From the sequence record MN563784.1: 64,000 nt of DNA. One strand, written 5' to 3'. Below, in pieces: positions 27,548-63,732 of this stretch. The notes under the pieces were generated by a model, which searched no databases, was not told where the DNA came from, and saw only the letters and a list, made by a program, of their open reading frames with translations. The stretch's first letter is position 1. Each line of letters opens with the position of its first letter. Position numbers and translations under genes: made by a program.

Positions 27548-28204
27548 ATGCTAATGAATGAAATTATCGATATTCTAGAAGGAGGGAAAGAGAATATTCT
27601 CTTAACTAACCATCTAGGTAATGGCAAATATTCCAATGCGGGTAATGCAATGGCTGCATCATATGCCATTGCGGCACATACTGCTGTTGGTCAATTGCGA
27701 GATGGTTCAGGAAAACCTTACTGGCATCATTTATTACAAGTAGCTGAGATGGCGCAATTATTCGACCTATCTCACGCTGCTTATAAAGCAGCATGGTTAC
27801 ATGATGTAATTGAGGATACTGCTGTAACTGCTTCTGATCTAACTAAACTATTCTCAATCCCTGTTGTTAATTTAGTAACTGAACTAACAAATGTAACTTA
27901 CGAAGGTAATCGTAAAACTAGGATTAGTTTACAACATGAAAGACTTTCTCGCATTTCATGGAGTGGTCAATCTCTTAAGTTACTAGATTCCATTTCAAAC
28001 ATGTGGTCGATTGTTAATGATAAGCCTGATTTTGCTGAACTGTATCTGACTGAGAAAGCTCAACTAATCAGTAAGTTAAATAATTGTCACCCCGCTATTA
28101 AAGATCTGGCTATATCTGTTCTCTATGGCAGGTGTACTATGGTTGGTGGGGATGCACTAAAAGAATATAATAAACTATTTTCTGATAATGAAATTGTATG
28201 TTAA
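27548..28204 (+). CDS. RelA/SpoT-type HD hydrolase (small alarmone hydrolase/Mesh1-like)
   Basis: H...GQLRDGSGKPYWHH, AAWLHDVIEDT, LKLLDSISN. Confidence 0.85.
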   Translation: MLMNEIIDILEGGKENILLTNHLGNGKYSNAGNAMAASYAIAAHTAVGQLRDGSGKPYWHHLLQVAEMAQLFDLSHAAYKAAWLHDVIEDTAVTASDLTKLFSIPVVNLVTELTNVTYEGNRKTRISLQHERLSRISWSGQSLKLLDSISNMWSIVNDKPDFAELYLTEKAQLISKLNNCHPAIKDLAISVLYGRCTMVGGDALKEYNKLFSDNEIVC

Positions 28205-57291: not shown

Positions 57292-57367
<76 letters not shown>

Positions 57368-59417: not shown

Positions 59418-59493
<76 letters not shown>

Positions 59494-61175: not shown

Positions 61176-61628
61176 TCAACGTGGCCATTGTAAAGAAGTT
61201 ATCTTATTACCATTAATGTAGACATCGGTCACTTCGCACCAATCATTAATTCTGTGTTCAATAATTGGAACATCATTTCGGCCAGCCACTCCAATCATAT
61301 TCCATTTAACATAAATATTCATTAGATCAATTGTTAATTTCTCTTTTATGAGTTTAGGAGAAATTAATTTAATATTATTAATGTTAAAGAAGTAATTATT
61401 AACTTCTTCTAAATATTCATTAGTATTAGTAGTACTAACTTTGCCTTCATGTTCAAGTGAGGATGGTTTATTCTGATTTACAATATTATTCACTAGACTT
61501 CTTAAAACGGCGCTTGCCCTACCAGCTTCACGTCTTTTATATTTATCATAGTCTTTTACATTAGCTGCAATTTTATCAAATTCTTTTTGGGCATAGATTA
61601 ACCCTGGTAAAAGTTCATTCTTAATCAT
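61176..61628 (-). CDS. late hypothetical protein
   Basis: TATGTA at 61653-58. Confidence 0.8.
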   Translation of the reverse strand: MIKNELLPGLIYAQKEFDKIAANVKDYDKYKRREAGRASAVLRSLVNNIVNQNKPSSLEHEGKVSTTNTNEYLEEVNNYFFNINNIKLISPKLIKEKLTIDLMNIYVKWNMIGVAGRNDVPIIEHRINDWCEVTDVYINGNKITSLQWPR

Positions 61629-61682
61629 TTTATAATTACTCTATGTTATTTGTACATATTTTAACATACTCACGTAAAAACA

Positions 61683-61836
61683 AAATATAAAGCCTCCCCG
61701 AAGGGAGGCGATATATCGTCATTAATGCCCAGCAAAGAGTTTTACTCTCTGGGAGCCAGTTGGAAGGGGGACTGGCTCCGATTTATTATGACTAATGTAG
61801 AAACGAGGGGGAGGGATCATTTCTACATATCATTAC
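61683..61836 (-). ncRNA. candidate late sRNA with C-rich, anti-SD-like loops
   Basis: TATGTA start 61834-39, two 9-bp hairpins with loops UGAUCCCUCCCCCUCG and CCCCCUUCCA, UUCG terminator 61692-61709, no ORF. Confidence 0.7.
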
Positions 61837-61848
61837 ATACTCAGTAAG

Positions 61849-63732
61849 TTATTCTTCAATACCAATGACCGTATTGCGTTCATTGGTGTTCTCTACGGTT
61901 GAACCACTTGGGAAGCTACTGACAGATGCTTGCATTAGTTTCAACATGTCGATAGCAAATACTCGATATGTAGATTCAACCTTAGCGTCGTCGTACGATG
62001 CATGAATGTTAAGAATGGCATTATCGGCCCTTTTAGCCAGCAGATATACATCCTCAAGAGCATCTTTATCTTTAATAGTGGATAGCTTATGTTTGTAGAT
62101 ATCCCCATTGACAGATAGGTCAGGATACTGGGCTACCCAAGTGTCCGCAATAGTCTTAGTGTTGTTAGACAGAACGTCAATGATAACGTTAGCTGCTTCC
62201 ACAATACCGGTAGCATCAAGCAACTTAATCTTAGCACCAGCATTATCTGGCCATTTGGGTTCTTGGAAGTTTGTCTTTACATTGGGTTTCCATTCAGCCA
62301 GAAGAGTAGCGACTTTCTTAGGGTCTTGCCAATCATTCCCTTTGAACAGATTAACCACGGGGGCTAGTATCTTACTGTTCTCATCCAGAACTTTCTGGTT
62401 GTGACGATCAGCTTTAGCTACAGCATTAGTGATATTGGCTTTTGCGGTCTTAGGATCATTAGACGCGAACGTCTCGTAACTCGATACTTTTACTTCGCCG
62501 GTTTTAAGCTTTGCTTCTGCCACCCATTTGGCATCACCATAGGTACTTTTCAGTGTAGCAATAGCTTTCTTCTTTTTATCAAGATTGATCTCAGGGCCAG
62601 AGTCGAAGATACTCTTAATGGTGTCGATAAGACCTTCATTTGAGACTTGTATAAAACCGGGAGTATTAATGATGGACTTCTCTACATACCCGCCACGAAT
62701 AACTCGATTTATAAAACCATTAAGACCACTACCAGTTTCGGCCATATCTTTCATGATTTCTATATTTGTTTCACCAGCACTCTGGGCATTGTATAAATAA
62801 TAAGAACCATCTTTAAATTTTAGTATAATCCAGTCATCTCCAGTTAGATATGAATCAATATTACTATCATTCATACTTTGGTATTTAATGAATTCTGGAT
62901 TAGTACTTAGTACTTCTTCAATAAACTCTTCTAATGCCGCAGAATTATTAATAGCATCAACAGGTGGAATTTCACCATCAATGGGTTCAGTAGTTGGACC
63001 AGTAACAATGGCAGGTAACGGATCCTCCTCTACAATAACAGTTTCTTCCACTGGTAGAGCACCACATGAAGCATCAATTAGTTTATTAAAACTACTAATG
63101 ATCTCACCAAGTGCTACAAGAACTGCTGGCTGTTCAACTTGTTCAACTTTAGCAATACCAGTTTCTGTAAATTCTTCAGTGATTCGGTTATAAACTTCTA
63201 CTAGTTGGTTAGTAAGTTCTGCTACTTTTGGCAGAGTCTGCTTAGACAGAGGTTCAACTACAGTTGTATCTGCTTCAACAAAAATAGAATCATCTTCTTC
63301 TAAACGGCTAGTATTAGCTGAGCCAGCTGTGAAGTTATAAGGCATATCTTGAATTACTTCATTAATTTCAGATGCCTCCATATCTTCATTTAGACGACCA
63401 CTATAAGTACGCATCATACCTTCTGCTTCTTTAATAGTGGAATGCGCTAAGCGTCCCCAATCACCACGCATAATACCGCGCTCGGTAAGACCGCGTGCAG
63501 CTGAACCAAGATCAATAGGTTCTTCAATAAATGATTGTTCTTCAACCCACTCTTCATTACTGTAACATTCTTTTAGAATGGTTTTAAATTTAGTACTAAA
63601 GGGTTGTAGAATCTTTTTATCTACTTGTTCAACATTTGTTTTAAAGTGTTCTAGACTTGGTGTAGCTTTTGAAGATACTTTTTCAGTACCGCTATATAGC
63701 GTACGGTTTAGGAAGTTTAGCATTTTATTCAT
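61849..63732 (-). CDS. large head/inner-body-type virion protein with KTSC-like domain
   Basis: Acidic N-half with SLE/SNE/ALE/SNE motifs matching the S/A/G-X-E head-protease consensus; SNIDSY..GDDWIILKFKDG.YYLY segment. Confidence 0.7.
   Translation of the reverse strand: MNKMLNFLNRTLYSGTEKVSSKATPSLEHFKTNVEQVDKKILQPFSTKFKTILKECYSNEEWVEEQSFIEEPIDLGSAARGLTERGIMRGDWGRLAHSTIKEAEGMMRTYSGRLNEDMEASEINEVIQDMPYNFTAGSANTSRLEEDDSIFVEADTTVVEPLSKQTLPKVAELTNQLVEVYNRITEEFTETGIAKVEQVEQPAVLVALGEIISSFNKLIDASCGALPVEETVIVEEDPLPAIVTGPTTEPIDGEIPPVDAINNSAALEEFIEEVLSTNPEFIKYQSMNDSNIDSYLTGDDWIILKFKDGSYYLYNAQSAGETNIEIMKDMAETGSGLNGFINRVIRGGYVEKSIINTPGFIQVSNEGLIDTIKSIFDSGPEINLDKKKKAIATLKSTYGDAKWVAEAKLKTGEVKVSSYETFASNDPKTAKANITNAVAKADRHNQKVLDENSKILAPVVNLFKGNDWQDPKKVATLLAEWKPNVKTNFQEPKWPDNAGAKIKLLDATGIVEAANVIIDVLSNNTKTIADTWVAQYPDLSVNGDIYKHKLSTIKDKDALEDVYLLAKRADNAILNIHASYDDAKVESTYRVFAIDMLKLMQASVSSFPSGSTVENTNERNTVIGIEE

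Follow-up and report, generated by a model that had tools for sequence, protein, structure and literature searches.

Few small RNAs (sRNAs) of strictly lytic phages have a known role. Phage T4 carries in its tRNA gene region the small stable RNAs C and D, whose function is unknown. An established kind of sRNA employs C-rich loops as seeds that block ribosome binding sites (RBSs) (PMC4615179, PMC3771888). In particular, the Xanthomonas RNA sX13 has three stable stems with apical 4C/5C loops, is Hfq-independent and represses mRNAs with G-rich motifs near their start codons, and the motif UCCCCCU is common to its loop 3 and to the loop of the H. pylori sRNA HPnc5490 (PMC3771888); the alphaproteobacterial ar14 or 'cuckoo' RNAs consist of two to four adjacent hairpins with anti-Shine-Dalgarno-like C/U-rich loops on freely covarying stems (PMC4615179). 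The present analysis concerns a 64,000-nucleotide (nt) stretch of sequence record MN563784.1, hereafter the window, in which a small RNA with two C-rich apical loops is encoded on the minus strand, in the gap at 61629-61848. A preliminary description, made from the sequence alone, had proposed a stand-alone late sRNA whose loops mimic the anti-Shine-Dalgarno tail of 16S rRNA, and had rightly cited RNAIII as a precedent for C-rich loops that block RBSs.

The transcript itself is already published. In phage phiKZ, Putzeys et al. (2024, Microlife, PMC10914365) reported TU237, a 141-nt small intergenic transcript that ends at terminator T131, upstream of PHIKZ302; it was detected by ONT-cappable-seq, its primary 5′ end was mapped, and a northern blot backs its size and abundance, which bears out the discrete minus-strand transcript that had been predicted. 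No function was assigned to it. A longer read-through form was also seen on the northern blot, so that the term 'stand-alone' carries a caveat and a secondary contribution in cis is possible. The RNA is not reported in the earlier differential RNA sequencing (dRNA-seq) and Grad-seq studies of phiKZ, both of which sampled early infection, and a transposon study gives no intergenic data. The literature searched contains no later functional work on TU237 RNA, and no role for an sRNA of any nucleus-forming jumbo phage.

The two C-rich loops suggest pairing with G-rich RBSs. The best reading, held tentatively and a little short of an even chance, is a late sRNA, made by the phage polymerase, with loops that base-pair to G-rich ribosome-binding regions, the mRNAs of the GC-rich host being the most plausible partners. 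What is new here is a conserved fold, a distribution across three genera among the jumbo phages of P. aeruginosa (Phikzvirus, Pawinskivirus and that of phiPA3, Miltoncavirus), independence from the downstream gene, an invariant CCCUUCCA loop and a negative result for phage targets. Folding calculations give the 157-nt stretch a free energy of -58.9 kcal/mol, compared to -32.5 +/- 3.4 kcal/mol for dinucleotide shuffles (z = -7.8), and 0 of 200 shuffles were as stable. The predicted architecture comprises a 5′-terminal hairpin (P1), a three-way junction in which helix P2 closes hairpins P3 and P4, and a terminator; the apical loops of P1 and P3 (L1 and L3) have unpaired probabilities of ~1.0 in the predicted ensemble. 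The features are as follows, where changed pairs and paired cells refer to the alignment of homologues and R1 is the covariance model built from it.

61826 to ~61686, minus strand: small RNA of ~141 nt, homologue of phiKZ TU237 (model R1, 98 bits, E about 1e-19)
61836-61839, minus strand: first TATG, which is TATC in phiKZ
61826-61829, minus strand: second TATG, the likely promoter, with its start at G61826; kept in all homologues of the three genera
61797-61826, minus strand: P1, 5′-terminal hairpin; 10 base pairs (bp) when counted from the start site, 12 bp given an upstream start; two pairs changed on both sides
61807-61816, minus strand: L1, 10-nt apical loop UCCCUCCCCC; predicted unpaired probability 1.0
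61785-61792, minus strand: 5′ strand of P2, GUCAUAAU; helix closing the three-way junction
61718-61726, minus strand: 3′ strand of P2, AUUAAUGAC; helix closing the three-way junction
61752-61779, minus strand: P3, 9-bp hairpin GGAGCCAGU/ACUGGCUCC; 100% of cells paired; two pairs changed on both sides
61761-61770, minus strand: L3, 10-nt apical loop CCCCCUUCCA with core CCCUUCCA; core invariant in Phikzvirus, Pawinskivirus and phiPA3
61733-61751, minus strand: P4, small hairpin CAGAGAGU-AAA-ACUCUUUG; one pair changed on both sides
61709-61692, with a U-rich tail to 61681, minus strand: intrinsic terminator GCCUCCC-UUCG-GGGAGGC, found by consensus scan; corresponds to phiKZ T131

Much of this fold had been drawn before. 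The UUCG terminator with its U tail and the second 9-bp hairpin, with the loop CCCCCUUCCA, are present where they had been placed; the arms of the first hairpin (61795-61803/61820-61828) are present as well, but its stem is longer than the 9 bp proposed, at 10-12 bp, and carries a 10-nt loop. The proposed CCCAG/CUGGG arm can be read in the window sequence but not in Pawinskivirus or phiPA3, and the conserved fourth helix is instead CAGAGAGU/ACUCUUUG (61751-61733). Pairing of the CUGGGC junction with the loops in a pseudoknot was rejected, as it would comprise only 3 bp and the segment is missing in the other genera. Hairpins with C-rich, G-free loops are scarce: a scan of both strands of ~282 kb of phage genome (stem of at least 7 bp; loop of 6-14 nt, G-free and C-rich) found about eight, and the two with the longest stems (12 and 9 bp) both belong to this RNA, at a separation of 45 nt. 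Further, the window, with 35% GC, holds ~41 C-rich 10-mers on both strands, many of them in terminator arms, and the longest two are L1 and L3.

Late promoters of phiKZ are TATG motifs, with transcription starting at the G (+1) (PMC4666361). The start at TATGTA that had been proposed is therefore right in kind, since the RNA has its own late-type TATG, but the conserved start is the second motif; the first is absent from phiKZ. From G61826 into the U tract near 61686 there are 141 nt, the published length, while a start at the first TATG would give ~151 nt. Because phiKZ makes a 141-nt RNA and lacks the first TATG, the second is the conserved promoter, which places P1 at the very 5′ end of the RNA. 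The boundaries predicted for the RNA of the window are 61826 and ~61686; the first TATG (61839-61836) may be a secondary late-type start in the window strain, and the promoter type suggests late timing.

The fold is conserved among the homologues. Low-stringency BLAST together with synteny located Pawinskivirus-type copies in PS119XW, phiHQ, BRkr, PA1C, phiLBG22 and HPP-Temi, and eight distinct homologues, each folded alone, yield the same architecture of P1 to P4 and terminator. In the alignment (A5), which has 29 consensus pairs, 95.7% of cells are paired, compared to about 42% (39-46%) in controls with the 3′ partners displaced by 1-3 columns; seven pairs changed on both sides, compared to 0-3 in these controls; and 0 of 500 column shuffles match the observed pairing, double-change count or covariation score. 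The covariance check across phiKZ relatives that the preliminary description had called for thus supports the structure. For example, the two-sided changes in P3 convert a G-C pair to A-U or C-G and a U-A pair to C-G. Helix P2 was misaligned between genera by MAFFT and was compared by direct reading: it is GUCAU/AUGAC (with AAU/AUU) in Phikzvirus, GACCACAGC/GUUGUGGUC in PS119XW, GGAUCACAGC/GUUGUGAUCC in phiHQ and GAACCGCAGC/GUUGCGGUUC in HPP-Temi, so that its sequence is wholly different yet paired in Pawinskivirus, with three two-sided changes inside that one genus. Moreover, P1 includes G-U pairs that the opposite strand would turn into A-C mismatches, which identifies the minus strand of the window as the structured one.

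Covariance model R1 matches only these homologues and reveals no paralogue elsewhere in phiKZ or in the window. Rfam searches with the whole region and with the narrow stretch returned nothing at threshold, the best matches being STnc100 (to the terminator only) and ar14. A pattern scan of IMG/VR for relatives retrieved only a PA7-like contig, and pattern scans of metagenome and genome collections gave only chance matches in GC-rich coding DNA. The sequences L011-L013 and L022-L025 were set aside as chance matches; among them, a GC-rich segment of an Opitutales metagenome-assembled genome (L024:1776-1866, minus strand) scored 24 bits with R1 (rough E about 0.009), but it was retrieved by its loop pattern and overlaps open reading frames (ORFs).

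Two further phages, Phabio (L020:2967-3056) and Viktualia (L021:1449-1556), have short TATG-to-terminator RNAs at the same locus, beside ribonucleotide reductase genes, each with a 5′ hairpin and a CUCCUU that is single-stranded in the Phabio fold and weakly predicted to pair in Viktualia. Their kinship with the phiKZ RNA is only probable because they lack P2 to P4 and are not detected by R1. In Viktualia, an annotated 39-codon 'hypothetical protein' that overlaps the short RNA is probably spurious.

The loops behave differently from each other, so that the predicted conservation of both stands in part. In Phikzvirus L3 reads CCCCCUUCCA, and in both Pawinskivirus and phiPA3 it reads AACCCUUCCA; its 8-nt core CCCUUCCA remains constant though two pairs beneath it change. 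L1 is UCCCUCCCCC in the window, UCCUUCCCCC in phiKZ and UCACUCCU in Pawinskivirus, and the longer phiPA3 loop contains ACUCCUCG; what it keeps is only a C/U-rich composition with a CUCC or CUUCC core. The apical C-rich tracts are predicted to be unpaired in every homologue. Pawinskivirus and phiPA3 have, in addition, an extra linker before the terminator with unpaired C/U-rich motifs (CCCCUCCUUU in Pawinskivirus only, UUCUCCUUGUUGUGUUGAUG in both). The 55-nt linker between P2 and the terminator (PS119XW L002:3121-3175) is identical across all Pawinskivirus-type phages, though their helices vary, and contains UCAGUUGGUAAG, which resembles a tRNA D-loop, together with two C/U-rich motifs.

Under the favoured reading of a late sRNA with RBS-pairing loops, the non-virion RNA polymerase of the phage would initiate at the G of the late-type TATG (G61826), and the terminator would stop most transcripts to release the ~141-nt RNA. 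P1 and the three-way junction would hold UCCCUCCCCC and CCCCCUUCCA unpaired at their apices, and the loops, by analogy with known C-rich-loop sRNAs, could seed pairing to G-rich, Shine-Dalgarno-like sites close to start codons and thereby keep ribosomes out. The phage is AT-rich, uses short AGGA, AAGG and GAGG sites and has no extended complement to the loops, which makes G-rich sites in GC-rich host mRNAs the likely targets.

Several results weigh against this reading. The RNA has no known target, and the sequence of L1 is not conserved. A target search covered a near-complete phage genome (phiKZ 1-213,500 and 275,500-280,334, together with the window, whose genes use the short sites named above). 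The loops pair better with phage starts than with gene interiors (-4.7 versus -2.2 kcal/mol, p about 1e-11), but 82 and 115 of 200 shuffled loops equal the loop-start means of -4.7 and -4.6 kcal/mol; since shuffled loops do equally well, the preference for starts is a base-composition effect. No translation start in this sequence has a complement of at least 7 nt to either loop, and no complement of the type TGGRRGGG, GGRRGGG or GGGGAGGG lies at a real phage gene start. Complements of at least 9 nt occur only in terminator 3′ arms, in the RNA's own antisense and at one site opposite PHIKZ134. Lacking extended complements at their starts, phage mRNAs are unlikely as specific targets, and the idea of phage early mRNAs as targets is not upheld. 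A further difficulty is the site of synthesis: phiKZ transcripts arise within the phage nucleus, and the RNA would need export to act on cytoplasmic mRNAs. Finally, Putzeys et al. class TU237 RNA as a 5′ untranslated region (5′UTR)-derived noncoding RNA candidate that arises by premature termination, with full-length read-through on the northern blot (PMC10914365), which is also an argument for the cis-acting leader considered below.

The terminator 3′ arms with 9-nt complements lie at phiKZ 172313 (plus strand), 43769 and 2109 (both minus strand) and at window 2352 (plus strand), and belong to a type, CCCUCC-loop-GGAGGG, that recurs throughout the phage genome. Separately, within the ORF at 27548-28204 of the window, an mRNA hairpin (27571-27598, plus strand; AUAUUCU/AGAAGGAGGGAAAG/AGAAUAU), 24 nt past the start codon, carries in its loop GGAGGGA, a perfect 7-nt complement of UCCCUCC in L1; this may be chance, as the segment codes for E-G-G-K.

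The locus is well conserved among phiKZ-like phages: the region 61400-62100 has 100% identity with Pseudomonas phage vB_PA32_GUMS and 91-99.6% identity with 46 others. The RNA lies in a 220-nt gap between two minus-strand genes, confirmed at the position first proposed, and this gap maps to phiKZ 273952-274163 (minus strand) with 94% identity, between the PHIKZ303 and PHIKZ302 homologues and on the strand of both; over the small RNA itself, 140 of 144 positions match between phiKZ and the window. The surrounding features are as follows.

61849-63732, minus strand: upstream neighbour, PHIKZ303-family virion structural protein, 627 aa; same family upstream in all three genera
61176-61628, minus strand: downstream neighbour, a 150-aa protein of the PHIKZ302 family, function unknown, followed by a tRNA cluster; not kept in the other genera
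61655-61668 (61668-61665 and 61658-61655), minus strand: two more TATG motifs, past the terminator and ahead of the next gene, read from the sequence only

The tRNA cluster downstream of the PHIKZ302 homologue includes Leu, Pro, Met, Asp, Asn and more. Neither ARAGORN nor the Rfam tRNA model finds a tRNA or transfer-messenger RNA within 61629-61848, and the seven tRNA genes of the window all lie elsewhere; tRNA-Asn (GTT) is present twice in the cluster, at 57292-57367 and 59418-59493 (minus strand). On the plus strand, the antisense of P3 (61752-61779) scores as terminator-like, with GGAGCCAGU...ACUGGCUCC followed by GAUUUAUUAU, and no plus-strand gene lies close by. In phiPA3, a second stretch with a TATG start (L019:5830-5975), immediately ahead of tRNA-Leu, starts with GUAGAGAACAG and ends with CUGUUCUCUAU; its ends form a long-range helix around ~130 nt, and a further structured RNA or a leader of the tRNA are possible identities.

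The RNA is more constant than its flanks. Across Phikzvirus strains it matches at 140-144 of 144 positions (97-100%), whereas the spacer that follows matches at only 44-49 of 54, and neighbour proteins fall to 56-70% identity in strains whose RNA is 96-100% identical. In phiKZ (L001) and Brmt (L010), the last 390 nt of the upstream gene (window 61849-62238) have no detectable similarity to the window, compared to 95-100% in PA7, SL2 and others; the mosaic breakpoint in phiKZ and Brmt falls immediately 5′ of the second TATG of the RNA. The downstream neighbour is PHIKZ302 in Phikzvirus, directly tRNA-Leu in Pawinskivirus and an unrelated 74-aa gene, 374, in phiPA3; this turnover from genus to genus marks the RNA as a module in its own right rather than a leader of PHIKZ302. 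Beyond the terminator in the window, and across its tail in Pawinskivirus and phiPA3, lie further TATG motifs, of which those at 61668-61665 and 61658-61655 may provide the downstream genes with starts of their own. The terminator follows at a distance of 8 to ~55 nt, the junction sequences vary by genus (AAUAAAUC, UCGCC, GCGCC) and the P4-P2 junction ranges from 0 to 10 nt. The lack of junction conservation argues against a ligand-binding pocket, and a riboswitch or other ligand-sensing leader, for which Rfam also gives no riboswitch match, was discarded. Overall, these results speak for an independent RNA gene whose loop acts in a sequence-specific way, rather than for a riboswitch-like sensor or a one-gene leader.

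Several rival accounts were considered, three of them here, and together with the favoured reading they leave some probability for other functions. The RNA might be the 5′ part of a PHIKZ302-tRNA transcript, a leader or attenuator in which conditional read-through of the terminator sets the downstream level and the short RNA is a by-product; this is unlikely. The published classification and read-through form agree with it, and the RNA heads the tRNA cluster in Phikzvirus and directly precedes tRNA-Leu in Pawinskivirus. However, the three genera have three different downstream genes, which may have starts of their own at the TATG motifs beyond or overlapping the terminator tail; no alternative anti-terminator pairing is apparent; and the junction nucleotides, where a sensor site is expected, vary freely while L3 is invariant. 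An improbable account is that of a structural or stability element with no role in trans, that is, a 3′ end module of the virion transcript, an insulator, or an aid to export or processing near the tRNA cluster. The T4 RNAs C and D are a precedent. A gene of the PHIKZ303 virion family always precedes the RNA, the terminator is strong and the opposite strand of P3 is terminator-like too; but phiKZ has a mapped primary 5′ end for this RNA (PMC10914365), and an 8-nt loop core that is invariant over covarying stems in three genera is unneeded for termination or stability. A small protein encoded by the 32-codon ORF at 61722-61820 (minus strand) is extremely improbable: the ORF begins with ATG in the window, but that codon is ATA in phiKZ, 124.01 and Brmt and ACG in PS119XW, no Shine-Dalgarno-like site lies upstream, the start codon falls within helix P1, and the substitutions compensate RNA pairing and are not codon-like. 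This loss of the start codon in relatives marks the unit as noncoding, in keeping with the ORF-free gap first described.

The remaining alternatives turn on how far the loops resemble the 16S tail. The string quoted for the 16S 3′ end in the preliminary description is correct, the last 14 nt of the annotated E. coli 16S gene being GGAUCACCUCCUUA, but the mimicry that it claimed for the loops holds only for L1 of window-type strains: in the window, this loop and its flank (GAUC-CCUCC) agree with the E. coli tail in 9 of 10 positions, with one gap. Elsewhere the likeness shrinks to UCCUU in L1 of phiKZ, to CUCCU in L1 of phiPA3 and to 4-5 positions in L3; moreover, the G and A of GAUC sit in the P1 stem, and the G is altered in phiKZ. 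Conserved identity to the tail beyond the CUCC core was not found. A close copy of the tail is thus a trait of window-type strains only, and conservation concerns unpaired C/U-rich sequence able to pair with GGAG or GGAAG. E. coli rRNA, from another species, contains complements to L3 of 8-9 nt, lengths that are unremarkable in ~4.4 kb of rRNA. One quite improbable proposal is a decoy that copies the 16S 3′ tail, in which the C/U-rich motifs titrate a factor that binds the anti-Shine-Dalgarno tail or pyrimidines, such as ribosomal protein S1, with no mRNA pairing. Besides L1 of the window, the Pawinskivirus linker motif UCCCCUCCUU matches the tail at 9 of 10 positions, and CUCCU(U) occurs in unpaired sequence of every homologue and in the reduced Phabio and Viktualia RNAs (with weakly predicted pairing in the Viktualia copy). 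Against such a decoy, extended tail likeness is not conserved, the invariant element L3 (CCCUUCCA) is the loop least like the tail, no candidate binding factor emerged in the analyses, and complementarity to GGAG-type sites accounts more simply for the same data. Another reading, rather unlikely, is an anti-Shine-Dalgarno look-alike that would mask strong, G-rich host RBSs late in infection and shift ribosomes to phage messages with weak Shine-Dalgarno sites; the RNA would then be the counterpart of protein-based host translation shut-off, with a CCCUUCCA loop tuned to P. aeruginosa, since only phages of that host carry it.

The RNA has been seen on northern blots, is near-invariant in phiKZ-like strains amid swapped neighbours, keeps its fold by compensatory changes and has one loop fixed; few candidates for a functional regulatory RNA of Pseudomonas phages are better founded. 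Should its loops pair with G-rich RBSs, the phage would bias translation with the device of sX13 and RNAIII, and the RNA would have to exit the phage nucleus; otherwise, the invariant loop still points to a specific partner worth finding.

Compared with known RNAs, TU237/T131 of phiKZ is the same object: locus, strand, size and terminator agree with the RNA of the window. The accessible text of its report (PMC10914365) does not describe the fold, the covariation, the Pawinskivirus and phiPA3 homologues or the C-rich loops. Like the RNAs C and D of T4, this is a small phage RNA beside a tRNA cluster, although its phiPA3 copy is not tRNA-adjacent. The likeness to sX13 is one of design: that RNA is highly structured, ~115 nt long and from a GC-rich gammaproteobacterium, and its loop motif UCCCCCU is also found in L1 and L3. 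It differs in being chromosomal, in having three consecutive hairpins where the phage RNA has a hairpin and a three-way junction, and in having experimentally shown targets; no sequence homology between the two was found, with nothing at the Rfam threshold. Similarly, the best Rfam alignment to ar14 (RF02344) sets both phage hairpins on its two CCUCCUCCC loops, but the score for the 221-nt stretch is 19.9 bits (E = 0.06), compared to a gathering threshold of 58.8, and the RNA is not a member of that family; the alignment shows shared design, as the CCUCCUCCC loops resemble UCCCUCCCCC and CCCCCUUCCA in composition only, the host clade is another and the phage RNA has a junction. In S. aureus, RNAIII and the Rsa RNAs start pairing with the RBSs of several mRNAs through UCCC apical loops, according to the summary in PMC4615179; their organism is unrelated and their size and architecture are different, and the likeness is by analogy only. 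The trait that unites the class of sX13, RNAIII and RepG/HPnc5490, namely stable stems that present unpaired C-run loops, is found in the predicted fold of the phage RNA, and, with its function unproven, it is by this analogy best filed as a phage-borne C-rich-loop sRNA.

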